From Pocillopora damicornis (Eukaryota), in the NCBI RefSeq assembly GCF_003704095.1, contig NW_020845812.1, positions 434,001 to 498,000 of the forward strand: a DNA stretch of 64,000 bases, written 5' to 3'. The notes under the pieces were generated by a model, which saw nothing but the letters and a program-made list of their open reading frames with translations, had not been told where the DNA came from and ran no database searches. The first letter of the stretch is position 1; each line of letters starts with the position of its first letter. The translations under genes and the position numbers were made by a program. Of this stretch, positions 941 through 57,939 are shown piece after piece.

Positions 941-1111
941 ATTTCCAAGATTTGCGTCCGTTAAAAGACCTCGTTTTGATAGCAGATTAACCAGCTTTGT
1001 CTTAATCTCGACAGGAAGCTGGGCTAACGAGGTTTCATGATTTGGTAACTGGCCGGCGACTGCTCTGAGGCAATGATTTTGCAAACTGCTCACCACGGCA
1101 AAAACCGCCAT
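941..1111 (-). CDS. AMN1: AMN1 homolog (leucine-rich repeat protein), first coding exon; the gene continues beyond the left edge of the window
   Basis: MAVFAVVSSLQNHCLRAVAGQLPNHETSLAQLPVEIKTKLVNLLSKRGLLTDANLGN (57 aa) resembles the AMN1 N-terminus (VSxLxxxCL...LPxxIKxxLxxxxSxxGxxTDxN). Phase-0 donor GTAAGT at 940. Confidence 0.75.
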
Positions 1112-1424
1112 ATTTTGTAATGTTATAATGAGTGGCAACCGCTAGTAACTGAAATGTGGGCTCATGATCATTTGGGAATCAAATCATTTGGTTTTGGCGT
1201 TGGTTTTTCTTAACTAGTATTCCATGGCAGCTTCTTTTACTGATAGAAAAGGGTCTAATGGTGCTGTATTCTAAGTTTTGCAGAGCTGTAATTTTCCTTA
1301 ATTTTCTGAAAAAATTCAATATAGGCCATGATCAAGCGAATTTTAGCTTTTCCCCAGTCTGTAGAGTCCTCTTACCCAGCTTCCTCTCTTTCGTGTACTC
1401 TAACTGCCCGTCACGTTGTCTAAC
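1112..1424. promoter_or_regulatory. Putative bidirectional promoter / 5' UTRs shared by AMN1 and DERA
   Basis: Only 313 bp separate the divergent ATGs (1111 minus, 1425 plus). Confidence 0.55.
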
Positions 1425-3155
1425 ATGTCTTCACACTTGGTGCGTAATCCAGGCATTCCGCTAGATTTAGAGTGGGTAGGTAGGACAAGAGTTAACCTTC
1501 CTGCTGTAAAACGACGGGCTGATACGCTCAAGACTCGCCGGTCAGTAAAGAAGCAATGGCAAGCGGCATGGCTTTTGAGAGCAGTGACTTGTATCGACCT
1601 TACCACCCTGTCTGGGGATGACACCGCGACGAATGTGTCCCGACTCTGCTTCAAAGCGCAAAATCCTGTAAGGAAAGACTTACTGGAAAGCATGGGTATG
1701 GCGGACAAGGGAATAACTACAGGTGCTATTTGTGTGTACCCGTCTCGTGTCCCAGACGCCGTAAAGACTCTCGAGAATCTTAACTCCAAGGTTCCAATTG
1801 CTTCAGTGGCTGCAGGATTCCCAGCAGGTGATCAACAAAATGAAATTATCGAAACTGCTTCTTAAAATTAAGAAATTGGTTTACACCTCGACGTTGACCA
1901 TGAATTTATAAAGTTAATGAAAATACTCCTATGAATTAAATGTGCTTTTCATCCAAGTATAACCCGTTCCCCCTTCCCCCTCCCCCCTCCACCTTTTAAA
2001 AAATTGCGTCTACAGTGTTTGTTGAAGAGTGACTAAGTTGAAACTTTTGTTTCTGGTTGGAGCCTTTGCTTATCATTGAAAGATCCAGCATTTAGATATT
2101 ATTATCCAAATTATTATCCAAATTTTTCTGTTATAACCTTAATATTTTGTAATATTTCCAATCAGCTTTTTTTGTTTTCATGTCTTCTCCTGTTTTCTCC
2201 CAAACTCAAGTGGGACATAGGAGAAGAGATGTGGAGTGATATTTGTGATATTTGGGATTGTACAGTACAGCTCAGAGATAGAGAAAGAATCACTTTCAAT
2301 GAGCTTTTGAAGAAGAAAGGCTTTTCATGGTCTTGATTACAACCATAATTTTGGATTGTAATGCCACACCCCCCCCCCCCCCCCCCAATCTTATTGCACA
2401 ACAAACCCAAGTGGCAATTGTTGAGGAGAGAGATGGCAATTCTAGCTGTTAATAGTATTTTCAATAGCTCTTATACCAGATGACATTTACTTGCAGAAAA
2501 TTTACTTCCAAGCCTTGTTTGCTCTGACATTTTTCTTGAATCTTTGCCTCTTTCTTGTTGTTTTAATGTGGGTATTGCTATTATTTCAGTATTTGGTGAA
2601 TATTGACTCATTAAAATTTACTAGTCCACCCCATGGAAGTGAAGCCTGTGGGTGAAATTTGGTATTCCAATATAAACATGCTCAAGACCTTTTCAGAATT
2701 AATAGTACAATGTGCATTCGTTATTTCCCTAAATGAGTATTTCACAATTGTGCTTAGTCTTGTCTTACTAGTTTTGTTTTTGTTTAATCCTTTACACCTA
2801 AACATCACTGTGTGTATTCTTCACATTATTCTCTATACATTTCCTAAGGTTCTGACAAAGGTAAATGAATAAATAGGGTAAGTTTCTAAAGAAACTTTGG
2901 TGCTGCCTCAGTAGGGAAGTGTTACAGGATAATTTTGGTTTTAGCAGGTAATTTAGTATTAACAACTGAGTTGAAAACGTAAACTAGCCACCGTAAAGGG
3001 TAAAAAAGCTGATGTTTCGAATGTTAGCCCTTTGTCAGAGCGATTGATGAAGGGCTAACGCTTGAAACGTCAGCTTTTTTACCCTTTACAGTGGCTAGTT
3101 TATGTTTTCAACTCAGTTGTTAATACTAAATTACCTGCTATACTCTCCCACCAAT

Positions 3156-3187
<32 letters not shown>

Positions 3188-6100
3188 TTTATTAATTTTG
3201 GTTTTATTTTGGTAACTGATTTGATGATGTAAGTTAGCCAGTTTACATAATCAATTCAGATGATAAAACCAGAATTATCTCATAAGAGCTTCCTTAGTTG
3301 TTGATCCTTCCTTTAGTTCTTGTTACCTTAATCTGTGATTCAGGGGTGATATTGTAAGGAAAAATTAAATGTTTGTCACTTTCAGCAGTCAAATGGTTTA
3401 AGATAGATAAAATGTTTTTGTTTTCAGGTCAGACACCCCTCAAGCAAAGACTAGAAGAGATAGAAACTGCAGTAGCTTCAGGTGCCACAGAGATTGACAT
3501 TGTGATCAGCAGAGCATTTGTTCTGGAGGGTAACTGGGAAGCACTTTACAATGAAGTACAGGCAATGCGCAAAGCTTGTGAAGAAGCCCATCTTAAGACA
3601 ATCATTGCCACAGGTACAATTAGGGATAATTTGATAGCCATGTCTATCATTAATGACACTGATCATATTTGTGGTGAATGTACATTGTATACAGCTGTTT
3701 CCAGAAAGGTTGTCAGAAAAATAAGTGTTAAGTACATGAGACAGTGCCTAAAGGAATTGTGGGTTGTTTAAAAGTCTTTAACTGTTAAAAACATCATTAA
3801 AAGGATGAGGCATCATGGGTTTGGTAAATTTATTTATTTGACTTATTGAAATTTGTTGATTATTTGGAAACCCATTTTTTTATTTGAGATTTTTGCATAC
3901 ACTTTTGTCCTTTTTCCAACAACCTTTCCTGAAACAGCTGTAAAATATTTTATGCTAGCAACCATAACCACCATTTGTCATTTCAACAGCCTGCTCTTTA
4001 ACTTGCTCCTACCGACTGAGTGGGGCCTGGGGCAGGTTATGATGGGTAGCAACACTCTTAGTTGCTTCATGCCTATGAAAGTTCCCAGATTGTGAGCCAG
4101 TTTCTCATTTGCTTGGTCTCTCACTTGACACCACCAAATGAAGGTCTGGAGCAGGTTATAATGGGTATTAACACTTAGTAGCTTCATGCCTGTGAAAGCT
4201 CCCAGATTGTGAGCCAGTTTATTGTTTGCCTGTCCTTTTGTTTGCTTTGACCAACTGAGGCCTTGGTCAGGTTATGATGGGTAGCAACACTCTAAGTTGC
4301 TTCATGCCCATGAAAGCTGCCAGGTTGTGGGTCAGTTTGTTGTTTGCCTGCTTTCTTGCTTGCTTCTACCAACTGAGGGCCTGGAGCAGGTTATAATGGG
4401 TAGCAACACTCCTACATGTAGTTGCTTCATGTCTGTAAAAGCTTCTAGATTATGGGCCATTTTTGATCTCTTGGGACCTCTGTTTATATACTGTATGCTT
4501 ATGGTAAGCATTCAGTAATGATATATCTCTTTTCTTAGGTGAACTTGGCTCTCTAACAAATGTTTATAAAGCTAGTCTGGTTAGCATGATGGCTGGTTCT
4601 GACTTCATTAAAACATCAACTGGTAAAGAGTCAGTTAATGCTACATTTCCTGTCGCACTGGTTATGGTGCGGGCAGTCAGGGATTACTATCAGGTATGCT
4701 ATATATGTTTGTTTATATTTGATATGTCCTTGCATGCCCAAATGTTTTTGGCACTTGAGAGCCAAAAGTACACAGAAATGTTCAATTCAATGTCTCTCAA
4801 AACAAGCATGAGAAGACAGTGTCCAGTGACTAGCTTGTTAGACTCTTGATTAAGGAGCTGGTTTTAGCTCTGACTTGATCATTGGGTTCTGTTCTTAGCT
4901 TGAATACTTGTTTTTTTAAGTATCTCTTTGCATCTAGAGGTGCATTATTTGTGGCTAGTCTGGGAAACTGTGAAAGAAACTTGATAAAAATGCTTGGGGT
5001 AACTTGCGGTGGATGAGCATTCCACTAAGGAATAACAGTCTTACCAGTCTGCTGAGATCAAGCAATAAAAGTCATGGGCTACTGGGTTTTAAGAATTTAC
5101 CTCCATTTGACCCTTAAAATAGCTAAGGAGCCTTCAAGGTGTGGGTAGTAACTGTTGTGATGTGATAATTTGTTGACATCTTTGCATGTGCGCGCTGATA
5201 TTCTGTGACTATTGTGTTTTTAAAACAGTCATTTGCCAAAGGAGACTTGAATATTGTTGAATACTGGTAATATCTGAGACAAAGTCAAGGGGATTATTCT
5301 ACAATATTCACTGAGTCTGGGGCTGTTCTGTAATTGCCCTGATTCTTTCAAGTTCTATAGTAAAATTTTTGTTGTTACAACCATTCCGTAAATGAAGAAA
5401 GCAGTGCATGGAATATTTTGTCGCAAGTATTATTTTGATTACTGGTATTGAGATAGGCAACCAGTTTCCATACTTAAATCAGCAAAAACTTCATATCTTA
5501 CTTTTGAAAAGTGTCTCGCCACACTGAGTAACATATTTTTGGCACTTTGCTGTTGAATTTTCTTTGATCATGTTATTACTTCCTCTGTAATTTGAAAAAA
5601 GCAAGACAGCTATTTTAAAATTTAGAGCCAATGTTATAATCACATTGTTGGAGGTGATTGATAGACTGCTCTGTGATTTACTGTGTGACTCTATTGAGAA
5701 GTTAGTCAGAATAAACCCTTGAGTGGTAAAGTTTGTTGTCAAGTCTTTTCGTTTTTGCATGATGTTACAGTTGATTATGGAAACATCCCGCTTTGATCTA
5801 AAACCTATTAAGTAAATCTTGCTGCCCCATTCCTCTGTGGTAATTTTGTTTTTGCTCTTCAACTATTTGTTGGATATAATGCTGTACATGTATATATTTT
5901 AAATGATGAGGACCAGTTTTATAAGAATGAGCTCTGGGAAGTGAAGGGCTGGTATAATTGATGTCACTCTAGATTTTATTTACATGTAAATAGAAGAAAC
6001 CAACACTTTTGGATTAAAAGTGAACAATTTGAATTTTGCCCTGAGGACCTCCCAAAATTTTCAACAAGGGTGTAACATTTTTAATATATTGTATGATAAA

Positions 6101-36176: not shown

Positions 36177-37187
36177 ATGTCCCAAGCATACTCACTCAAA
36201 CTGGTTATTCCTCTCAGTATTTTATCAGTGAGCGTTATAGTAACCAACACACTTGTCTGCCTGTTGGTGTACAAGGTCAAATCAATGCGCAACTACACCA
36301 ATGGATTTGTAGTATCGCTCGCCATTTCTGATATTGTGACAGGTGTTGCTATCCTCATCCAATATAACGCCAAGCTCCACGAATGGTCTCGAGCAACACT
36401 TAACGTCTTGTACGCTATTGTGCTTTTCGTGGGGGCATCAAATCTCTGCGCAGTGACTTATGACAGATACTTGGCAATTTTGCACCCATTTTCATACGCT
36501 GAAACGATAGCGAAAGTTTTCAAAATCGTCGTGCCAGTAATTTGGATCTTCTCGGTGGTGGTCGCATGTATACCGCTTACATGGGAAGGAAATACGACAA
36601 TTCTCCACACAAGAATTTACATCGTCTTCTTTCTCATCATTTGTATAGCTCTACCTTACGTGCTAATAGTCTGTGCAAATTATAAGATCTTTCGATTAGT
36701 GAGGCAATGTGTGCGTCGTGAGCGAGAACTGAGCATCTCCTCGCATGCTTCGAAAGCGGATACGAAAAAAAAATGTACGCCAAGGAAGATTTCCTCTGAA
36801 GCTAAAGTGGCGAGGGTCTTCGCTGTAGCATCATTTATGTTTGTGTTGAGTTATTTTCCAAGTTTATTTTGGTCGGCAGCGAACGCCGTGGGCCATAAAG
36901 AAGTGGTTCCTACGCTTTTACTGGACTTCTCGCCTTTCTGTGTGGTTTTTGGATCTCTTGTAAATCCTGTTTTGTACTCGTTCATGAAACCGGATTTTCG
37001 TAGAGCCCTGGAGAAAATTCTTAGTGGAAAACGAGCCTATCTGAACTCGAGAAGATCTCAGAGGTCATCAATGCCAAGCATTGGAGAAACATACTCTACG
37101 CCAATTGTTCCAATGAAGACAAAGCAAACTCTAGTAGTCAATGGTGTGTTGTGCAAAGGGAGCGATCCTACCGAGAGCAACGTCTAA
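36177..37187 (+). CDS. Class A (rhodopsin-like) orphan GPCR 1, intronless CDS, 336 aa
   Basis: 7 TM segments; TM1 Asn, SLAISD, DRY, TM4 Trp, LPY, SYFP, NPVLY, helix-8 KPDFR. Confidence 0.93.
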   Translation: MSQAYSLKLVIPLSILSVSVIVTNTLVCLLVYKVKSMRNYTNGFVVSLAISDIVTGVAILIQYNAKLHEWSRATLNVLYAIVLFVGASNLCAVTYDRYLAILHPFSYAETIAKVFKIVVPVIWIFSVVVACIPLTWEGNTTILHTRIYIVFFLIICIALPYVLIVCANYKIFRLVRQCVRRERELSISSHASKADTKKKCTPRKISSEAKVARVFAVASFMFVLSYFPSLFWSAANAVGHKEVVPTLLLDFSPFCVVFGSLVNPVLYSFMKPDFRRALEKILSGKRAYLNSRRSQRSSMPSIGETYSTPIVPMKTKQTLVVNGVLCKGSDPTESNV

Positions 37188-38795: not shown

Positions 38796-40943
38796 CTACA
38801 GCTCGGCGTTACATGAGTTGGCAAACAGTGCATCACTGACGAGTTGAATTCCAACCTTCTCGACGAAGTTTGAATATTGTTTTATAATGGGGGAGTTACA
38901 GTTTATTTCACTGGCCTTAGTCTTGTAGCATGCAAACCACTCGACTGAATCTCTACAAATACGTTGGTTTTCCTTCATCAAATCTAGAAATTTTTTGCTA
39001 CATGTCCTGTGAACTTGAACAGCACAAGAGTTGAAAAAATCGTCTTGATCTGAAAAACCGAGAACAGCAACGCAGCATGAACAATTAGCACCCTGCTTTA
39101 AAAGTGATTCATAGAAGTTTGCATCGGTTTCATTTATTCCATTTAGTTTGGAACAAGAGCACAGAATTAATTAATTAGCATTTTACAGAATTTTCTGATT
39201 CAAATTCGTCCAGAGGCCTTATATCACATGCTAAGAATAGCAACATGAATTTCTGAAATGTCGGACACATCATAATTATAAACATTCCTTGCCAAATTAA
39301 GAAAAAAAAAAACAAAACAAAACCAGAAACAAACTTGAGCTAGCAGTGAAATTTGGAACTTTAGGTACTCCTTCTTTTCCTTTGGGCGAGGAATTACGTT
39401 AAGAAAAAACTGACCAAAGAGAAGTTCTCTTACCTAAGTTTTCCACCAACATGTATCCCGCGGCAGCACCTGTGGCAGAAATAGAGTTTTGCTTAAAGGC
39501 CATGTTTTGTCATTGATCTTAAATTGCAATTTGGACTCGGATGGCTGGATTCAGATAAAATAATATAATGATGGTTTGAAGCATGAATGCAAAGGCACTG
39601 TGTCTAGATATTATAAAAATGTTACCCTTTTTAAACTAAAGTGCACATCTAGCAAAATGGAACAACTCGAAGCGACATCATCCAAATCGAGATTAGCCGA
39701 AGACAACATCTATTCTATTTCACCTGTCTTCTCACTGGTATCCTTAAGGCCTTCATGGTTAACCCTTGGACAAACCTTCAGTTTTACTTCTAGCATTGCC
39801 TCTTGCAAAATCCACAAACGAAATCGGTTTATTGATTGTCCTTGGCAAGAAGGATTTTCAGCAAAGCAATCGACCACTCCCTTCGGTTTAATCAGAAAAT
39901 AACTCTTTTAGATCCTATGACGCAAGAATTCATTTTCTACTGTAATAATATACATTAAAAATTACACGCTTCTAATCGAATGAAAAACGAATGCATTCTC
40001 ATGTAATACGAGTGAAAAATTGTAACACGAAAGCAAAATTGTAACACGTCTTCAAATTACAAATAGCGTGCGCACACTTTTAAAATTTCGTCTGTCTTGA
40101 CTTTACAAATGTTCTTTCATGCACACTAATAACAAGTAGTAACATGATTTCTCGGGCAGTTTGGTGTAATAAGCGCTTGTAAATTGCACTTTTCTGACGG
40201 GCTCGTGCCTTTTGCTGTTTAGCAAAAATTTTTTCGTGCTTATTAACATTAAATTGTACCCAAAATCATCTTATTACCTTTACTTAATTGAGATGGTGCA
40301 ATTTACATTTTAAAGTGAATATTCCTTCCGGAGTGGGGGAGGGGGGGGAGGGGGGGCATCGTCAGCCGAGGAACGAAGTAAGCCTTCCTTTTATAGAGGC
40401 TCGTAGGAGTTTTGGAAGATTATACCAAAAATATTTATAATAATGACGAAAACCCCTAAGAACAAGCATTTTATACCCAAGGAAATATCGGATTGGGACA
40501 ATAGGGCCTGTCTTAAAATCAAATTATCATGCAAATATTGTTCCGGATTGTTCTAGTTTCGATAAAAAAAACTACTCTGTCTCAAATGAGATATCTATCC
40601 GAGAAATGTCTCCAAAGGAGAGGTTACCCTATATATCGTACTTTCTCCAGATCGGGACATGAACCGTCGTGGAATTGATGGGAAATAAAAGGAAAAAAGA
40701 CTGCCTTGCCTTAAGCATAACATTCATGGAGACTTGATCAGAAATTTTCCTTAATATCGTCAGTCTTACCTGTACACGTGTACAATGCTGTTCATTATTT
40801 GGTTTTTCCTTTACAAGTTCTCTATAGCGAGAAATGCATCTGTGTAGCAACTCGGTTTCACAGTTATTTGCTCGTACAGAGGTGAGCAAGAGGGACATAC
40901 TAAAAATCAGAATAAGCACTCCAATTTTTCTTGATGCTGTCAT
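38796..40943 (-). CDS. Uncharacterized signal-peptide protein with two 6-Cys domains and C-terminal NAEL (paralog A), 4 coding exons, 206 aa
   Basis: Exons 40943-40770, 39880-39724, 39469-39434, 39049-38796; GT-AG, phases 0/1/1, 621 nt. MTASRKIGVLILIFSMSLLLTSVRA-NNCETELLHRC..HCTRVQGVVDCFAENPSC..VCP..SCAVQVHRTC..IC..AC..NC..SCNAEL*. Same architecture as paralog B. Confidence 0.85.
39945..40288. repeat. Interspersed repeat (probable MITE) in intron 1 of paralog A
   Basis: Internal AAAATTGTAACACG duplication and a terminus CAAAATCATCTTATTACC that I recall from a common anthozoan repeat; single copy in this window. Confidence 0.35.
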
Positions 40944-43621
40944 GATGGCCGAGTTGAAATCTGTAGAAAGACAAAAGTTGGTAACGTACATCCAATGTTA
41001 CTACCTTTCCTACGTGTGACCAAACGTGCTGATAGAGGGAGCCGTATTGTATTGATTTCTTTTATTCCCTCCATGATTTGACGAGAAAAATCACGCCACC
41101 CTCTCAATTAAGTGCAATCAGATACAAAATTAAACAAATGGTGACGTTTTCATTCTATTTTCGCGCGCTTATGATTATCGGTTCTCGGTATATTTTCCTT
41201 TGTCCCAACTGATACTTTTCTTGGACTCGGATGTAGGAGACTTAATCGAAAATTCGTTGCACGCGTTGTTAAAAAATGTTTCAAGCAATCAAGCTCTATT
41301 GGTAACAAGCTAACTTCAGAAAATCCTATCCAGTTCTAAGGTTTTGTTGTAGTTATTCAGTAAGTGTTACTTCAGTCCTCATGAACAAGAACACTAATCA
41401 GTGCTAACACTCTAAACAACTGTCGCTGTTTTGGCACTGAAGCACAGGCTTTACAACTGTTTTGTTTTATTTATTTGTTCTGCTCGAAAAGTCAGTTCCT
41501 TATAGCAAGTGTCTTCTAATTGGCAGTGTTTGGATAGCCTGGTCCGTCTTATAGCATCCATCTTGAAAATAACATAGTCAGAAATTATCAAAGGAGAGTA
41601 GATTTTATTTTCACAAGAGGAACATATCAGTACATCCACCCATGAAAAACAAAAATTGTCTTCGAATGCACTTCGTGTGACAAAGCGTTTTCTATATACC
41701 TCGCACTAAAGTTATCCTGAATGAAAACAAAATGAAGTAATTTTCAGTTTCTTCGAGAGAAAATCAAGAATTCCCTCAAGAAGCCACACCGACGTTTTCA
41801 TGCTGCTTTTTGGGTGGATATGTGCTGTCTACTTCACTCAATCCTAATCCTTGTGGTAAATTTACTAACAGGAAAAGGGTTTGCGTTTCCTTACATATAG
41901 GTACAGTGCTGCTAATGAATGTTTAAAGGTACGATATGGTTTATTGAAATGAGAGTGGAATACTAGTTATGAATAGTTCGTCTACCGTTTAGAATGACTG
42001 TAGTTTGAATTTAAATAAACTACACTCTTTTAGTGCACTGGCGATATTTCATTCTCTTTACTTAAGAATTATGTGCAAGATATTTCTTCACTGAAAATGC
42101 GACCGGCCAGTGATACTTTAACGACTACTAAATTGTTCAGAATTTTGCAAATAATCGTTGATTTTTCTTTGCGGTCTTAACAACCTGGAGCTGAATTAAT
42201 GAACAACCTTTTAATGAACCGATTTACCGCCATCCCCCGAAAGTTTTCGGGATCACTCAAAGGAAAAAGGGAGGGGCTTTCTTTCTTTAACACAAGTCTT
42301 TTTACAGCCCAAATATGAAATGGTGAAAAGAACACGTTTCTTGTCATTCAGTGTGAGCTTAATTAATATTAAGAAATCTGTACCTCTTTCTTTTGTTGAA
42401 CTTGAAGCTAACTTAAAGGTTCCTCTTCTGCTCTTCAAAATATAAGTATACCCAATTTCAAAGCTAGTGCATTCACTTTAAAGAGTGATCTTTCATAAGC
42501 ACAGTTTTTCTTTTATACGTAGATAAGGGAAATTTCTCAAGAAAGCAGCTGCAAAAAATAAATATTCAATGACATTTGAGAAATTTTACAAAAAGGCAAC
42601 TGCAATAAAGTAAACATGATTATTGAATAATTTTTCGCGTCCGTCTATTAAAAACAGCAAGTAGAGCCTTGTTATCTCAAACTACAAAGACGAAACTAAA
42701 CCGGTTTGGATATCATGGAGTTCAAGGTGTTTTTTCCGGTAAATGACTAAAAATTTTTCAAGGGAAATTACGTCAAGCTCGACCTCACCGCTGAGTAAAG
42801 TCAGTTAGGTTCCACTGAGTGATGGTAATTGACTTTTGTCCGATAAAATTTCCTGAATATCAAAGAATGAGCGACAACGACTTACGTGTATTATTGAATA
42901 TCATCCCCAATCAATAAAGCATTAACGGATGAACTTAGATTTCAAATTAAAACATCGATGACATAGATTCCGTATTCATCGTCTTGATTTGAAAATGATG
43001 ATGTACAAATAGCGGCTAAAGTGTTTCACGGAAATTGGTCGGTAAGCTGAGTCAGAAAGATAAGACAAAAACAGAAAAAAAGATACTGAAACACTCTAAG
43101 TTTGACAACTTATAATTCACAGGTGAAATAAAAAATAAGAAATCTGCGATGTAACTTCTTCCAATCTCGCTTGATTCGTTTCAATTCACTACAATCGGTT
43201 TAACACGAACCGGACTTGAAACGCCCCCAGAAAAACACAAATAATATTTACAATGATGACGGTTTGAAGAAGGTGATAACAAGCTTACTTTATGATCTGA
43301 AAGGAAATGGAAGCCTCGTTTCATTTGTAAAAGAAACATACAAACCTTAATTTTGAAATTGAATAACTGAAACTTGGTATTGATGACTAACCGGTATTGC
43401 CGATTTAAATTTATCGCATTCATTTTCATGAACGACTCGTACACCCCGTTGTTTGAATTTATTTTTGGCGGGGGAATAAAAGCAAATTGTGACCGAATTA
43501 TACAACGGAGAAAAAAATACGATGAAGTTTTCACTCTTTTTATTATGCATTAGAGAACGAGAGTACTCATTTGCAACTGCTCGCAAGTTTTTTTTTCGGC
43601 AACGGTTCAACTCGAACTGTT

Positions 43622-43820
43622 TCACAGCTCAGACCGTTTACAGTCGCTCGCCAGTTCTGGTGCTAATTCTGCAACAAAATTAGCGAAGGGGACGATAACC
43701 AACCACTCGTCACAAGTGCTTCCCTTATAGCATTCCAGCCAGTAGCTGCCATCGTCCCGGATACGATGGCTTTTCCGTAAATTTGTGCTGTGCACGGCTT
43801 TTCCTCGTGAAATGTATCGA
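43622..43820 (-). pseudogene. Decayed duplicate of the last exon of paralog B
   Basis: EEKPCTAQIY/RKSHRIRDDGSYWLECYKGSTCD..FVAELAPELASDCKRSEL* versus B: KDKQCATQIH..RKNHRICDDGGYWLKCYGESGCD..FVAELAPKLVSDCKRSEL*. Carries a ~34-nt frameshifting deletion and a Cys>Arg change; no acceptor AG at the homologous site. Confidence 0.8.
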
Positions 43821-45952
43821 AGGAAAACATATCAGTGAATGAACATGGATCACAGACGGCGATAAGCAATATTCGTAGTGCCAAGGCAATGTATGTGAAT
43901 TGATAAGAAAAACGATGTGAGTGGAATTGGCAGTATTACAACACGATATATTTAATTAAGATGGACTCAAGTAACTGAAGTCCACGGTAACGGGTTGGGC
44001 ATATGATAATCATGCATATTCAGCCTGCTCGTGTGTAGTCAAGTAACCTACAAAAAAAAGCATAATTCACGAGCTACTTCTGGTTTTGCAAAGGTTCGCT
44101 GATGACTCGTCCTCTTATGTATTAGGTATCCCATTGTGAATCTTTACACGCCCAAACAGAATGGTTGTGTAAAGATTCACAATGACCGTAGTAGAATAAA
44201 ACTGTCCATGATAAACTTATTCTCGCCTTTGAAGTCGCAAACTGCAGTTGTGTTTTTTCAGATTGAATATTGTGGCGATACTTTCGTTCTGTACTCTAGC
44301 CTGCAATGCAGACGTTTTATTTGGGCGAGTCAACCGTTAAGACACTTGCGATCGTTTATTCAATCGGCCACGTTTGATTTGGAGTTAGAATCAACGGTGG
44401 GGGGAGGGGGCGGGGAAAGACTGAAGGAATATTCACTGCCCCACCCCCTCCCTTCTCTCTCAACTCCTCGGTACAAATTTCGAGCACTCGCCCGCCAAAA
44501 TTACGCCTTCTCTGCAAGTTATCTGTCCTCGAGCTTTACATCAAAACTAAGGCCAGTGTTCCGGGATACAATATAGGCAAACAAATTATTGACGATAGGA
44601 GTGAATTAGCAACTTCATTAGTTACTAACCACGTACGCTTGGTATTCAAGTACTCATTGGCGCTTCTAGGCCGTGCAACATTTTTGAGGACGACGGAGGA
44701 AATATAACCATCATTTGGTGGATCATAATCGCCAGATTATCCAAAAAAAGTAAGGTCCTCTTATAATCTGCAGGATAGTAGTTGTATCAGTTTTGCTTTG
44801 TTCTGTTTTGTTCTTACAGGACACAAATCAAGAAACTTGTCCAATGTTGTAACTATCATAGTACTCGTCCTCTCCGCCGTCACCTTTGAAGTTTCTAATT
44901 AGCCAAAGGCAGAGAAATGCCTGAATAAAAACTTTTGGTTGGGCTTTTGAAATTTTTCCCTGAACCGTTCATTTAAAACAATCTTGTTTCCCAAACATTT
45001 ATGAACAAAGTAAGCTAAGATCTATATCATGGAGGACAAGTGCATAGCACCTGTTGTATACAGTTCAGGCCAGGTTCCTCCCACGTACTTAGCAAACTTT
45101 CGGCTTCGTTGATTCTACCGTGCGAGCATGCTCTCATTTGCACCGCCACACGTGTGACGAAACTCTCGTGTCTCCAGTCGGCAAGCAGTGTGTGTCAGCG
45201 AGAGGTCTGCGAGAGTTCTGGCATAAAAACAAGCGCCATACAGGTGCCCGTTTTCATTAATACTGCGAACTCTTAGTTTTCTTCATAAATAGATCTGATT
45301 TAATTCAGTTATATACTGCAAGAAGCCAATCACTGATAACACGTCTCATCATTTAACTCCCTCCCTCCGTCTCTACACAACAGTTAACTTAAAGGTAACT
45401 CCAAGTCGAGTTGTTGTTGGGTTTTTTCACAGTGCTTTTCAATTGTCCTTTTTGAACGGTAAGTTTACCAGCAGGAACAACTTGAGTGCAAATGAGCTGA
45501 GCTCAATTCGAAAACTAAGTCGTAGATACCGAGGAAATCAATAATGTGTTGGTGAAAACTCCTAACGTGTTTAAGGTTTTCCTCGATAGAAACTCCAGTC
45601 GTTTCTTGTATCATTCACTAGGGTTTTCTTCCGATTAACGATAAAAGCTAACGACTGTGATGAACAACCTAGCCGGGACTATGTGCTTTTAAAACAACCT
45701 TATTTTAACTACCGACTGAAAAGGGTCATACACAATGACCTTAGCAGACGTCGTAATAGACGGCTTTCGGAGGAGAAGTCCTAAGGATATTACATGAGTG
45801 GTAGGTTTCAAATTGACTTAACTCAATGTTTAGTAGACATAAATAACGATAAAAAATACTATCCACAATGAAGTTTTCACTTTTAATCTGCATAAGGGAA
45901 CATGAATACTAATTTGCAACTGGTTATACTAATTTTTTGATCCCAAATGGTT

Positions 45953-47726
45953 TCACAGCTCAGACCGCTTACAGTCACTGACTAGTTTTGGTGCCAATTC
46001 TGCAACAAACTTTGCGTAGCGGACAATCGCCGACTCCTTGTCACAACCGCTTTCCCCATAGCATTTTAGCCAATAGCCACCATCATCACAAATGCGATGA
46101 TTTTTTCGGACCAGCTCAACGAACTGCTTCTTGCAGGATTTGTGGATTTGGGTTGCGCACTGCTTGTCCTTAGCAGATATAGCTATGAAGGTAATATTTG
46201 TGAAAATGAGCATGTACTAAAGGCTTAATCTAATTAGAAATTTTCCTTACTGTCTGCCATACTATTCTTGTGATGTGAGCATAGTGAATTTGGTATGGGA
46301 GAACTAACAATCCCCTAATTGATATTTCTCTTTATTCCTATCACTACTCTGCTTGAGTTGTAACGATATCATATGGAGAAAATCTCTCTTGGTCACTCGT
46401 GGGAGTTAAAGGTAAACTATCTTAAAACCGTTACCTTGTCATTTAACTCTAGATGAGCAGAAGGGGCACGAGCTCAAACCTTCTACTATAGAGAGGTAGA
46501 GCTACATTTTTAAGATGAGTTTCACTTCTTAAGAAAAATTCAGTTGTAGATATTATTCAGACTTTCCTACAATGTTTTTCTAATTCCTATTAGCCACTTA
46601 CGTTTCGCCTTTAACCGCTCATAGATGCGTCTTGGTTTGGCTACATGTTTAGGGTAAGAAAAGGGAAATGGAAATGATTTGTGAGAAGAGTAGATAAGCA
46701 AAAAAACACACGGGGATAAGGAAGATCATTAATCGGCGTTATAAAACGTAGGCCATATCGATCGTGAAAGATAAAAGAAAAACTGCACGAGATATTGTTA
46801 AACCCTCCTTCGAATTATTAGTCACGGTGTGGAATGTAGCAAAGTGGGTAAGTAAAAAGAGGAGAATAGACTACGACTCTTTTTTTCGAACCACAGTCAA
46901 CACTATATATATGTTCTTACAGTCATCTGGAAGGTATTCGTAGAACTTTTGCAGCTGCTGATCGTCCCTTGGGCATATGTCAAGAAACTTCTCCAAAGTT
47001 GCAATCATTAATACCCACCCTCTCCACCGTCTTATGTTTTGACCCTTGCAGTCTCTGTTTGACCAAAAGCAGCCAAATACCTCCTACAGTAGTAAAATGG
47101 TATAACTATAATAACATCCGTAATGTGGATGAGTTTCTTCAGCTTTTGAAAGCTACAATTTCGTGAAGTCTGTATTTGCAAGTATTATATTTTACAAGGT
47201 CCATGGGATTTTATCAGGGAATCTATTATTATCAAGCTAGCATAAGGATACGATATCTTCCGTGATAAACTCTTTTGGTATGAATCTGTGAACAGCCAAA
47301 TTATTAAAAAGACGCGAGTTCTACTTCCCTGTTTTGGGAAAGAAGTTTTTATCTACATTTTCTTTCTTAGTTCAGTTTAATTCATCAAAACCAATGCGAT
47401 GAAAGTGCATTTATGACAATATTTATACATCTGGTGATAGGTATAAACCTTTAAGGACAACTTACATGAAAAATGTTTTTTCGCAATTCTCTGTGAACAG
47501 AATTAAAGTCAGACGGCTCATTTGCAACGTTTTGTAAATTCCTGTATTTTTAAAACCTACTCATCTATTAAGTTACCTTTAAGCGCGTACAGTGAGAGCC
47601 CTCGTCTGGTTTCTTGTCCAACAGGGTCACATAAGATTTTGTGCATTTTTTTACCAGTTCTCTTTCACATGCATCAGAAAATGAAGTCAAGCAAAGAAGA
47701 ATAGCCAGGCAAAGCAACCACTTCAT
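45953..47726 (-). CDS. Uncharacterized signal-peptide protein with two 6-Cys domains and C-terminal RSEL (paralog B), 4 coding exons, 193 aa
   Basis: Exons 47726-47577, 47083-46921, 46640-46602, 46182-45953; GT-AG, phases 0/1/1, 582 nt. MKWLLCLAILLCLTSFSDA-CERELVKKC..HCTRLKEVFGCFWSNRDC..ICP..QCATQIHKSC..IC..KC..GC..DCKRSEL*. Confidence 0.87.
46225..46415. mobile_element. Partial TTAA-family MITE in intron 3 of paralog B
   Basis: Right end GGTCACTCGTGGGAGTTAAAGG and the body resemble 10917-11128. Confidence 0.55.
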
Positions 47727-47886
47727 TTTGATTTGAATCTGAAAAGAAGAAGAATAAAAAAATATGCCGAGAAACAAAAGTTATTAAAGCTGATCACCAT
47801 CTGATTTACAGCCGTTCCAACGTCGTAACTCGCGGCCCAGCCATCTGGAAAGAACGTCGGCATGATCCGTTTGAATTCCATGAGCA

Positions 47887-47894: not shown

Positions 47895-49359
47895 CTGACT
47901 CATTCGCTTAACAGTAGATGAACATCCGACACGTAGTCGGGAGGTTTGAGGTTAAGATCATCATTGAGGACTTAGATTATTTTCATTTTGCACAAACAAA
48001 TTTTTAAGTTCCTCTATATTAGCTTTGTCTAGAGGATACAGCCCTAAATAGCAGTTTAAGCGGTAGACCCTAGAGAAAGTTTACTTTTTCCGCGCACTTG
48101 CAAAATATCGACAATCCGTCGTGACTAGAAACAGGTGCGACATTATTTAACCTTCCTTTTCCACCAATTTTTTTTGTCTCAACCGAAAGTGACCACAGAG
48201 TATTTATTTGGTTCAGTTTACTGAGGTATAACTTGAAAACATAGAGGGGGAAATAATAAGGTTTGAAACGATGTCCAAAAGGCGACCTTGAAATGTTACA
48301 GATATACTGTGACAAACTACAGACGAAGCAGTTCATTTAATCAGTTAGTATTTCTACGCTTGGTGCCTCAGTTTATATTATTACGTTCATCACCGTTACG
48401 CCACAAAATTAGTTAGTGGAAAATAGGATATACCCTCCAGCTAAGCGAGTGTTTGGAATTTACAGATCCCAAGAAACAGTCTCTTTCCCTGAAGAATTTT
48501 GAATCAATATCGCTCTTTTTTCTTTTGTTTACTCACGAAACTGAGAAAAAATGCATACGGCTGGACTTTTCAGAATCGTTTTGGTACCATACACGCACCT
48601 TCAATTTTTAGCAGCAATCTTTAAAAATGCGAAGGAAAAGTAACTCAAGTCTTAACTAACTACCTTAATCAACTCCAATGCTGAAGTTATACGATTTTGG
48701 ATAAAAGACACCTACTTTTTTAAAATGCCGTGGCAAGAATCGTTCCGAGCTTATCCTTCTACAGGGGTTCAAGCCATCTGGAATTAAGAACTTTGATAGA
48801 TTAGAAAATACTTATTTTCATACTTTCAAATTAATTTCCGTTTTTTGTTGACTCATGGACGTGTGAGAAGTAAATAAAATTGGCTTGTAATGAATCAGCT
48901 TTGGTGCTAAATATACATGTCAAGTTTTAAAACCATCTTTCTTTTTTCCTAATTTTGCGACTGTTAAACAATAGTCATTATTTCTTTCCCTTTTTTTTTC
49001 TGCACTCTTCGACCAGTTTTATGCATATGTTCCTCCCAATCCAAGCTTTCAGGAATTAATAAAAATATAAAAGCACCGATGTTTGTCATTATCGATAATA
49101 AAACGTTCTGCTAATGTCATTTAGTTTGAAGCTTTGTTTTTTTTGCTCATTAAATTCCTATCAATCAAATTTTCGGTTTTCAACTGCAATTGTATCGCAG
49201 TTATTACTCCTCACTGTAACGCTTTGTTCTACTTCGGTTTATCAGACCTGTTGTTGATACTGTGATATTCATTTCTCTAGCGTTTTCTGCGACGGCGCCT
49301 TTGAAGTGCAAGAAAGTCAAACATCTTAGTTAACCGGTCATGTCTCCTCGTACCAGGAT

Positions 49360-52500: not shown

Positions 52501-52703
52501 TCCCAAGCCCTTGAACAGTGGATTTGGTACGATAGGTAAATCCCTCGAAGTCTCACAGTTTTGCACATTACAACCAGACATCTGGGTCAATAACAGAACA
52601 GGATCAATTTTCGCCGCGTCATTCAACCAACAATCAAAAGGAGACAGCGCTTGAAGTCATAAACTGAATTTTAATTTTGCAATAGTTGAAACGTCTATCG
52701 CTA

Positions 52704-53678
52704 ATGCGGCCAAGTGAGATTGCCATCCCGTTGGGCTGCCTGTCATTGCTGATCGTAGTTACTAACAGCTGTGTGTGCCTCTTGGTGTATTTACATCCCA
52801 AGCTAAGGACTTACACCAATGGATTCGTTGTGTCCCTTGCAGTGTCAGACATACTCACAGGTGCCCTCCTTTTGCCTTTGTACATTGCTTTGCCAACGCA
52901 CCCTGTCACAGGATACATCGTATGCGCTATTTTGCTTACGGGGGTCGCCAATGTTTTTTTAGTGACTTTAGACAGATACCTGGCTATAAAAAAACCTTTT
53001 AATTACTATGCCGTCATGAGGAGATATTTCTTCAAATTCATTGTAGGTTCTTGGATTGTTCCTTTGTTTGTGTCAATCATTCCTCTCATTTGGGGGTCAG
53101 AAGACAGTATACTAGCTCAAACAATCTACATGTTTATGCTACAAGGTATGGGCGTTGTTGTGCCGTATTTATTTGTGTGTATAGCCTACTACCAGATCTT
53201 TCAGCAAGCTAGGCATATTGTCAAGCGGTTACGACGAGATAGCAGTCTCGGCAGCTGGCGAGGCAAACGGGACAACAAAGATAAACTGAAGAAAAACTCT
53301 AACAGCACGATGGCTTCAGAGACAAAAGTTGCCAAGATGTTTGCACTGATATCTATTTCCTTCCTCTTAAGTTGGACGCCAGTGTTATACTTGACCAGCA
53401 TATGGTATGTATATGCAATCACTGACAAAAACACTGTGGAAATGTTATCGCCGGTGTGGCTCTTGGAATTCTCTTTGTTTACTGTCGCACTGGGCTCTGC
53501 GGTCAATCCAATAGTCTACTCTTTCTTCAAACCCGACTTCCGGGGCATTATCAAAAAAAGATTTCCTAACCGAACTCCTTCGTCAACTCTGAAACAGGAT
53601 TCAACATATGTTATTGATGTTGCTGTGGTAGTAAAAAACCTTAAAAATGAAAAACATGGCAAAGAAACCGACCTATGA
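52704..53678 (+). CDS. Class A orphan GPCR 2, intronless CDS, 324 aa
   Basis: First ATG 52704; RTYTNGFVVSLAVSD, DRY, SWTP, NPIVY, KPDFR; clear paralog of GPCR1 and GPCR3. Confidence 0.93.
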   Translation: MRPSEIAIPLGCLSLLIVVTNSCVCLLVYLHPKLRTYTNGFVVSLAVSDILTGALLLPLYIALPTHPVTGYIVCAILLTGVANVFLVTLDRYLAIKKPFNYYAVMRRYFFKFIVGSWIVPLFVSIIPLIWGSEDSILAQTIYMFMLQGMGVVVPYLFVCIAYYQIFQQARHIVKRLRRDSSLGSWRGKRDNKDKLKKNSNSTMASETKVAKMFALISISFLLSWTPVLYLTSIWYVYAITDKNTVEMLSPVWLLEFSLFTVALGSAVNPIVYSFFKPDFRGIIKKRFPNRTPSSTLKQDSTYVIDVAVVVKNLKNEKHGKETDL

Positions 53679-56600: not shown

Positions 56601-56922
56601 TTCATAAAGGAAGGAAAACCAACAACATTGAAATCATTGCGGTACTACGCTCAGCACGGGATTAGGAACATATCAAAGATTTTCAAGATTGTGGATTGTA
56701 GAATAGATTCATCGCTTGAACACCTACGAGAGACAACCACAAAGTCGGGAATAACCTTGGTACTGGTGATCAATGGCAACAAAGTACTACCATAGTCAAC
56801 TCTTCGGCAATTTTATCGCACCAAAACAAGCTGCCCACAGAGTTGAATACGTTTATTAGGAAAACACAAAAGGAAGACAATTATAGAAGTCAGCGCTGCA
56901 TCAAAACGTGCTCTGCCGAAAA

Positions 56923-57939
56923 ATGGCTGAAACTGATCACAACGCGGATTTTGTGGTAGTATCTCTGAGCATTCTTTCAATTCTCATCGTTTTATCGAAC
57001 CTTTGCGTTTGCCTCTTGGTTTATTTCCAGAAAGATCTTCGAACCAACACCAATTGGCTAATGGTGTCACTCGCCGTGTCGGACATTTTAACAGGAGGAG
57101 TTTTGCTGCCTGTCTACCTCATCAAGCCTTCTTCGACTGTAACAGGTTATTTAGTGTGTATGATATTGCTCTCTGGTGTTGCAAATCTATGCACTGTGAC
57201 CTATGATCGATATGTTGCCATAATGAAACCACTGGAATACTCATATCGGGCGCCTAAGAAACTCAAAATAGGTCTCGCACTTTCGTGGGTGCTTCCAGCA
57301 ATTTACTCCTTACTCCCTCTGTTTTGGGAAACTGATTCAACTCGAATAATACATAGGGCATATATGGTCTGCATGATGTTTTTCGGCATCATCCTGCCTT
57401 ACATCTTCATTACGTTTGCCTACGTACGAATGTTTAAGCAAGTTCGCAGAAGCCTGACAATGAAAAAGAATTTGGATTCTCTTAGAGTGCACAAGAACGA
57501 ACGAAAACGATTGCATTCTGAAGCCAAAGTAGCCAAAGTTTTCTCCATAGTTGCTTCAGCTTTTCTACTCTGCTGGCTACCAATCGTCTACATAACAACT
57601 GCAGACATCATCTTTAATAGACCTAACATCATCCCATATGCACTGTCCATTATTTCCTTTTTCACCATAGCAACCAGTTCATTGGTAAATCCACTTATGT
57701 ACGCGTTTCTGAAACCAGATTTCAAGAAGGCCATCCGGACTTGCCTTCGTGAATGCACTCGTAAAGAAACAGCATCCACCATTCGCAATCTTCCGCTGGC
57801 CGCTTTAACCATCGGAGGACCCGAGAGGATATACGAAGCAAAATTACCTAATAACAATTCAGCAAAGACCGAGGAATTATTATCCAAAGAAAATAATGAC
57901 TCTCAGGAGAGGTCTTCCCAAAGTTCAGTTCATTGTTAA
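56923..57939 (+). CDS. Class A orphan GPCR 3, intronless CDS, 338 aa
   Basis: First ATG 56923; SLAVSD, DRY, EAKVAKVF, CWLP, NPLMY, KPDFK. Confidence 0.93.
   Translation: MAETDHNADFVVVSLSILSILIVLSNLCVCLLVYFQKDLRTNTNWLMVSLAVSDILTGGVLLPVYLIKPSSTVTGYLVCMILLSGVANLCTVTYDRYVAIMKPLEYSYRAPKKLKIGLALSWVLPAIYSLLPLFWETDSTRIIHRAYMVCMMFFGIILPYIFITFAYVRMFKQVRRSLTMKKNLDSLRVHKNERKRLHSEAKVAKVFSIVASAFLLCWLPIVYITTADIIFNRPNIIPYALSIISFFTIATSSLVNPLMYAFLKPDFKKAIRTCLRECTRKETASTIRNLPLAALTIGGPERIYEAKLPNNNSAKTEELLSKENNDSQERSSQSSVHC

Follow-up and report, generated by a model that had tools for sequence, protein, structure and literature searches.

The window analysed here, a 64,000-nucleotide stretch of the Pocillopora damicornis genome (contig NW_020845812.1, positions 434,001 to 498,000), carries two neighbouring genes on its minus strand, A and B, which encode small Cys-rich proteins of 202 and 193 amino acids (aa). 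Judged from their sequences, A and B are tandem paralogs of a real but unnamed small family, members of which were found in stony corals and in sea anemones only. The account that we favour is that of tandem paralogs from a family confined, as far as it could be traced, to Hexacorallia, whose products would enter the endoplasmic reticulum (ER), fold into two helical domains held by six disulfides and carry an ancestral KDEL-like retrieval tail. Taken with all its parts, we regard this account as about evenly poised between right and wrong.

Gene models and transcripts of A and B

Each of the two genes has four coding exons, the splice sites of which were located by script, and all coding introns are of the GT..AG type with phases 0/1/1 in both genes. 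Gene A spans 40943-38796 (-), position 38796 being the last base of its stop codon, and its product has the C-terminus NAEL. Gene B spans 47726-45953 (-), position 47726 being the A of its ATG, and its product has the C-terminus RSEL. Local alignment of the two scores far above shuffled sequences (z = 44) and marks them as clear paralogs. A sequence-only reading of this stretch had described two genes for proteins of ~200 aa with phases 0/1/1, a micro-exon of 36/39 nt and 12 mature Cys residues; the gene models reproduce all of these features as well as the Cys spacing and the NAEL and RSEL ends given there, and the coordinates agree exactly. The features of the two genes are as follows.

40770..40943, minus strand: gene A coding exon 1, 58 aa, with the predicted signal peptide and Cys1-3 of domain 1; phase-0 donor GTAAGA
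40943-40869, minus strand: codons of the predicted signal peptide of A, with a predicted cut after V-R-A
39736..39880, minus strand: gene A exon 2, 145 nt, with Cys4-6 of domain 1; phase-1 donor GTGAGA
39434..39469, minus strand: putative linker micro-exon of gene A, 36 nt, phase 1 in and out, placed by analogy with the RNA-confirmed micro-exon of B
38796..39049, minus strand: gene A exon 4, with the entire domain 2 and its six Cys; the same open reading frame (ORF) is found in 69 database ORFs
38810-38799, minus strand: codons of the NAEL tail of A, followed by the stop codon at 38798-38796
48716..48777, minus strand: non-coding 5' exon of gene B, with its 3' end at 48716 followed by GT; at least 62 nt in the RNA contigs, spliced to the acceptor before 47738
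47577..47738, minus strand: first coding exon of gene B, with the ATG at 47726, the coding part at 47726-47577 and Cys1-3 of domain 1
47726-47670, minus strand: codons of the predicted signal peptide of B, with a predicted cut after S-D-A
46921..47083, minus strand: gene B exon 2, 163 nt, with Cys4-6 of domain 1; joints seen in RNA from 4 runs
46602..46640, minus strand: linker micro-exon of gene B, 39 nt; joints seen in RNA from 4 runs
45953..46182, minus strand: gene B exon 4, with the entire domain 2, identical to the RefSeq protein P0019
45967-45956, minus strand: codons of the RSEL tail of B, followed by the stop codon at 45955-45953

Parts of gene B are contained in 22 public RNA runs from 9 studies, and four of these runs, from four different studies, were aligned to positions 43500-47850. 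The splicing proposed in the sequence-only reading is borne out for B, since all three of its coding introns appear as GT..AG joints in the RNA contigs of all four runs (47082/83>47576/77, 46640>46921 and 46182>46602, each reading CT..AC on the plus strand). These contigs are assemblies and give no information on expression level. They break at 47738 and resume in window letters 48745-48716, which are followed by GT. It follows that gene B possesses one or more non-coding exons at its 5' end, a feature absent from the sequence-only reading. For gene A we infer the splicing from its canonical sites, its colinearity with B and the matching positions and phases of the first two introns in a further paralog, D. 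Exon 2 of A starts 4 residues ahead of Cys4, and the same is seen in B and D.

All 193 residues of the B protein are identical to part of XP_027047044.1 (P0019), which is annotated in Pocillopora damicornis as an "uncharacterized protein". The RefSeq model of B is 226 aa long, as it begins at an upstream in-frame ATG in the 5' exons and gains 33 extra residues. The methionine of the MK[W/R] motif is the start in P. verrucosa (193 aa), Stylophora, Oculina and two further coral orthologs, and because the orthologs all begin there we take it as the true start of B. By this comparison, the annotated RefSeq start is probably too far upstream. In the protein collections gene A is represented by ORFs of its last exon that continue without a break out of the preceding intron (P0003 with 68 cluster mates), and no full-length annotation of it was found there in searches restricted by length windows.

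Protein architecture and distribution of the family

After the predicted signal peptide, mature A and B have exactly 12 Cys residues each, spaced C-x7-C-x17-C-x8-C-x6-C-x24-C in domain 1 and C-x7-C-x14-C-x8-C-x5/9-C-x23/28-C in domain 2. The signal-peptide cores reach Kyte-Doolittle (KD) values of 2.7-2.9 over 12 residues and are followed by small residues at positions -3/-1 of the predicted cut (V-R-A and S-D-A). Neither protein has a second hydrophobic stretch (maximum KD19 0.87) or an N-glycosylation site. The hydrophobicity profiles of both are thus those expected of soluble ER proteins, with a predicted cleavable signal peptide and no membrane anchor. The masses are ~20 kDa, and the isoelectric points are 6.5 for A and 9.2 for B.

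Each protein had been proposed in the sequence-only reading to be an internal duplication. Pairwise comparison of the two halves gives weak scores, 3-5 standard deviations above shuffles (z 3-5), but the proposal is upheld by profile-profile comparison. An hhalign comparison of a domain-1 profile (nine sequences) with a domain-2 profile (fourteen sequences) gave a probability of 66% and an E-value of 5.5e-5 over 59 columns, with Cys1-Cys5 in register. MAFFT, left free, also set exon 1 of A onto domain 2. From these alignments we consider the internal duplication to be real but old.

Full-length B was searched and folded via the database records P0019 and P0020. The AlphaFold2 model of P0019, built on a 16-row alignment, has a pLDDT of 81.8 and a pTM of 0.72 and is all helical, with three helices per domain and short linker helices. 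Domain 2 modelled alone likewise gives three helices (pLDDT 78). In three anemone proteins both Cys1 and Cys5 of domain 1 are lost while the other ten Cys are retained, and this joint loss suggests a Cys1-Cys5 disulfide. For the remaining Cys residues we infer the pairs 2-4 and 3-6.

A HMMER search with the last exon of B against 1.84 billion representatives gave 16 matches at E<=1e-3. Four spurious long matches (P0004, P0009, P0011, and P0015) belong to repeat proteins of the ankyrin, Ig or PKD type, and P0012 was excluded as a repetitive protein of short tandem units, judged from its sequence. The remaining matches are short cnidarian-type proteins. Word-based searches with full-length members and their alignment added proteins from Stylophora, Oculina, Actinia, Exaiptasia and Actinostola. 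B orthologs were found in P. verrucosa, P. meandrina, Stylophora and Oculina, and full-length anemone homologs in Actinia, Exaiptasia and Actinostola. All relatives are labelled "uncharacterized" or "hypothetical", and no relatives outside Hexacorallia were identified in the HMMER and word-based searches. No papers on the family came up when the literature was searched by accession, locus tag and theme.

Within the P. damicornis genome (a 234-Mb assembly of 4393 contigs) the family profile matched A, B and a pseudogene between them. It also picked out contig C2707, which carries a complete paralog (D), and two more divergent domain-2 exons, on C3576 and C1899. Paralog D (C2707:~448860-450670 (+), L005/L008) has all 12 Cys residues, and the positions and phases of its first two introns are as in A and B. 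In a tree of domain 2, the anemone proteins and D group together (support 100/99), and all other coral members form a second clade. In Exaiptasia, a 207-aa gene with no Pfam match lies 5 kb upstream of a family member on the same strand (LJWW01000605.1 (L020), 1078-4432) and may be a tandem paralog. An identical Exaiptasia protein, P0022, has been entered under two LOC numbers.

The C-terminal tail and possible ER retrieval

The C-terminal tails of the family members are listed below.

RSEL: Pocillopora B, three species
RSDL: Stylophora B
NAEL: Pocillopora A
KEEL: P0007
RVEL: P0005 and P0010 (two clusters)
KMEL: three anemone genera
C-x-S: Oculina and three further B-type proteins
CDKK: P0006
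End at the last Cys: P0016 and the C3576 paralog (LMC)
QMELK: paralog D, with one Lys beyond MEL

A tail of the KDEL type is present in ~8 of 13 lineages and absent or masked in ~5 of 13, and it is found in both deep clades. Eight lineages, drawn from both sides of the coral-anemone split, finish in EL or DL and have K, R or N at position -4, even though the distance from the last Cys to the tail varies from 4 to 5 residues. We regard this recurrence in the aligned sequences as far above chance, and the geometry as that which the KDEL receptor needs. A gene for a KDEL receptor is present in the genome (PF00810, E 6.9e-26).

The requirements of the receptor have been determined in human cells (Raykhel et al., 2007; PMC2140024). 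Position -4 may be K, R, H, N or aromatic, position -3 any residue but Pro, position -2 E or, more weakly, D, and position -1 L or F (PMC2140024). This code derives from single substitutions of KDEL, and combinations of them are not guaranteed to work. RSEL, NAEL, RVEL, KMEL, KEEL and RSDL each agree with the code at every position. Several human ER proteins have tails of a similar kind, namely KVEL in ERp27, KAEL in MSRB3, QSEL in AGR3 and KTEL in AGR2, and RTDL is likewise used (PMC2140024). These four share with RSEL, RVEL, KMEL and NAEL a non-acidic residue at -3 within [K/R/Q]-x-E-L, whereas their folds (thioredoxin-like and others) are unrelated to the coral family. Many such proteins remain in the ER without the tail, so the presence of the motif does not prove its use (PMC2140024).

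As [K/R/N/Q]-x-E-L sits on both sides of the deepest split in the tree, the KDEL-like tail is probably ancestral, and would have been lost later in some branches and masked in D. The extra Lys of D would mask the retrieval signal unless it is trimmed. The sequence-only reading had taken the signal peptide and the terminal xxEL together as a sign of ER retrieval, and had held that homologs lacking xxEL would speak against this. The first part is supported by the fit of the tails to the experimental code and by their occurrence in both deep clades, but the terminal EL is not conserved throughout, as homologs ending in C-x-S, CDKK, the last Cys or QMELK were identified. Retrieval to the ER is therefore best described as plausible, and not as universal among the members.

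The claim that the proteins belong to no named family is supported. Pfam gave no significant match for any coding exon of A or B or for eight full-length homologs, and a profile search of PDB sequences returned nothing but a chance match to ROR-beta (E 0.2). Foldseek against the PDB found nothing at E<=0.001 for the whole model or for domain 2 alone, and for both inputs Foldseek and VIA-align returned generic helical bundles only, with nothing above the helical-bundle background.

Neighbourhood of the genes and rival readings

Between A and B lies a third, B-like copy, C (~43622-44900), which does not appear in the sequence-only reading. It is decayed and is read as a pseudogene, of which two pieces were identified.

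43622..43830, minus strand: exon-4-like piece of pseudogene C, ~81% mean column identity to B exon 4 across the aligned stretch
44790..44900, minus strand: exon-2-like piece of pseudogene C, with an in-frame stop, indels and loss of Cys4 and Cys5

In the exon-4-like piece a frameshifting deletion of 34 nt takes out Cys2 and Cys3 is changed to Arg, but the RSEL end is kept. No RNA contigs were found over either piece in the four runs aligned to 43500-47850.

Two other kinds of element were seen near these genes. A short element at 46228-46412, in intron 3 of B, attracts a very large number of RNA contigs in each of the four runs, with 90-95% identity and a summed depth that reaches ~19,000. Because these contigs extend into unrelated sequence, the element is read as a high-copy transcribed repeat that is separate from gene B. 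Stretches rich in G/C homopolymers (C runs, with G on the opposite strand) occur at 40330-40400 in intron 1 of A and at 44335-44520 in the pseudogene region. The latter draws RNA contigs with odd internal skips and is likely a repeat or low-complexity element.

Genes for rhodopsin-family G protein-coupled receptors (GPCRs) are found near both Pocillopora loci. Intronless ORFs of this type lie at 36177-37187 (+), 52686-53678 (+) and 56908-57939 (+) in the window, and at C2707:441963-443114 (+) and 451660-452811 (-) at the locus of paralog D. The tail-to-tail distance is 1.6 kb from gene A and 1 kb from paralog D. A 7tm_1 gene is located 7 kb from the Actinostola homolog, and none within 10 kb of the Exaiptasia one. 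The receptors at the A/B locus are not closely related to those at the D locus, so the shared neighbourhood does not represent one duplicated block. With ~2576 first-look 7tm_1 GPCR candidates in the genome, the proximity may be due to chance.

In the favoured account, a soluble protein of ~20 kDa would enter the ER by a signal peptide that is predicted to be cleaved, and would fold into two tandem three-helix domains with three disulfides apiece. The two domains would stem from an ancient internal duplication, with a short helical linker between them encoded by the micro-exon. The C-terminus, [K/R/N]-x-E/D-L, would most likely be an ancestral signal for retrieval by the KDEL receptor. A, B and the anemone proteins would then be retained in the ER and early Golgi or keep cycling through them, and constitutive secretion would be expected of the members that lost the tail (C-x-S, CDKK). 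As to what such proteins do, our guesses are a helper in the ER lumen or a factor that is released conditionally, in the manner of MANF. MANF and CDNF (the ARMET family; ER-resident and conditionally secreted, with RTDL/KTEL tails) resemble the coral proteins in being small and soluble, in having a signal peptide and disulfide-bonded helical domains, and in a non-canonical KDEL-like end, which would permit retention combined with regulated release. They differ in that no sequence, Pfam or fold match links them to the coral family, whose Cys pattern is 2x6 and which has no saposin-like or SAP domain.

Several observations weigh against this account. The tail is absent or masked in the non-pocilloporid B orthologs, P0006, P0016, the C3576 paralog and paralog D. 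The PROSITE pattern PS00014, [KRHQSA]-[DENQ]-E-L, fits KEEL only and fails for NAEL and RSEL, and the combinations RSEL, NAEL, KMEL and RVEL were not found in the main text of PMC2140024. The upstream RefSeq start of B would bury the signal peptide, although the orthologs do not have that extension. Lastly, the RNA evidence covers B and the pseudogene within 43500-47850, and A lies beyond that stretch. The tail data in particular, with losses among even the close orthologs of B and most of the tails outside the PROSITE pattern, would also suit ordinary secreted extracellular proteins, such as small helical carriers or ligands, in which the terminal EL is a remnant of the last helix with no retrieval role. 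Rhodopsin-type GPCR genes 1-1.6 kb away, tail to tail, at both Pocillopora loci would suit a ligand too, but given the large number of GPCR candidates in the genome this adjacency is only a weak hint. A mere helix remnant does not readily explain why EL or DL with a fitting residue at -4 recurs at the very end of so many lineages despite a varying distance from the last Cys, and on balance we find the secreted alternative rather unlikely.

The question of ancestry is a separate one. The family may be a distant cnidarian branch of the ecdysozoan group of DUF19 (T20D4.11-like), CPG4 and DUF1397 proteins, which would fit either localisation and which we put forward tentatively, as possible but doubtful. 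Proteins of the DUF19 group are secreted, ~200-230 aa long, and have signal peptides and 12 conserved Cys residues. The nematode and arthropod DUF19 (PF01579), CPG4 (PF15481) and DUF1397 (PF07165) proteins are thus similar to the coral family in length, signal peptide and many Cys residues; their own function is unknown, no significant match by hidden Markov model (HMM) connects them to the corals, and they are a homology candidate only. In the language-model Atlas, the nearest neighbours of the coral protein P0020 are DUF19/CPG4 clusters (0.80-0.83), and the divergent anemone protein P0013 has the same set and two arthropod clusters (0.86-0.89, 173-186 shared features, 204-234 aa), but according to the tool's own note feature scores <0.9 are common for shuffled proteins. 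No other named group came up repeatedly, and we keep this weak pointer as a lead. Two coral members also gave sub-threshold matches to CPG4 (E 0.22 and 0.86), with domain 2 aligned in both cases to the early part of the profile, the best of them with 12.5 bits against a gathering score of 32.7. The DUF19 and CPG4 HMMs did not match the A/B loci when run over the genome. Three weak DUF19 matches elsewhere in the genome are unrelated (two represent a GTPase-like gene pair and one a VWD-like region).

A likeness to the N-terminal domain of RGM and to neuritin, suggested in the sequence-only reading from the Cys spacing, was not supported. Neuritin has the spacing C-x9-C-x24-C-x8-C-x7-C-x27-C, which is loosely like the coral pattern, and RGM, neuritin and GFR-alpha/GAS1 are likewise disulfide-stapled helical bundles in secretory-pathway proteins that share with the coral family the general idea of a three-helix bundle with six Cys. 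They are, however, GPI-anchored or membrane-associated, and the coral proteins have no C-terminal hydrophobic signal. Over the whole genome the HMMs for RGM_N (PF06535), NRN1 (PF15056) and GDNF-GAS1 (PF02351) matched other loci or nothing, never A or B, although RGM_N did find a genuine gene elsewhere in the same genome. The same three gave no match at E<=10 on the exons or homologs, and no RGM, GFR-alpha or GAS1 chains appeared in the top 50 rows of either VIA-align search (two runs over 48,161 chains) or among the listed Foldseek matches. We therefore consider membership of this group highly improbable. Venom or nematocyst components, to which many cnidarian Cys-rich secreted proteins belong, are just as hard to credit: the signal peptide, richness in Cys, lineage restriction and tandem duplication would all suit a toxin, but the proteins are helical and of 20 kDa, unlike the SCRiP small cysteine-rich coral neurotoxins, the sole such family that we met in the literature; no toxin family was matched in Pfam, and the KDEL-like tails speak against export. 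Only slightly less remote is a wider scenario in which an ancient metazoan 12-Cys helical module, kin to DUF19/CPG4, would switch between retained and secreted forms by gain, loss or masking of [K/R]xEL, and the released form would be a ligand of the adjacent GPCRs.

These results have some practical consequences. Many secretory proteins of corals and sea anemones are lineage-restricted, and for one such family the structure of the genes and the arrangement of the domains are now defined, along with a helical model of good confidence. Two small annotation corrections follow, as no full-length model of A was found and the start of B is probably placed too early. Since tailed and tail-less variants both occur in nature, forms that would be retained can readily be compared with forms that would be secreted. 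Should the kinship with DUF19/CPG4 be true, a large uncharacterised ecdysozoan family would reach back to the cnidarian-bilaterian ancestor.

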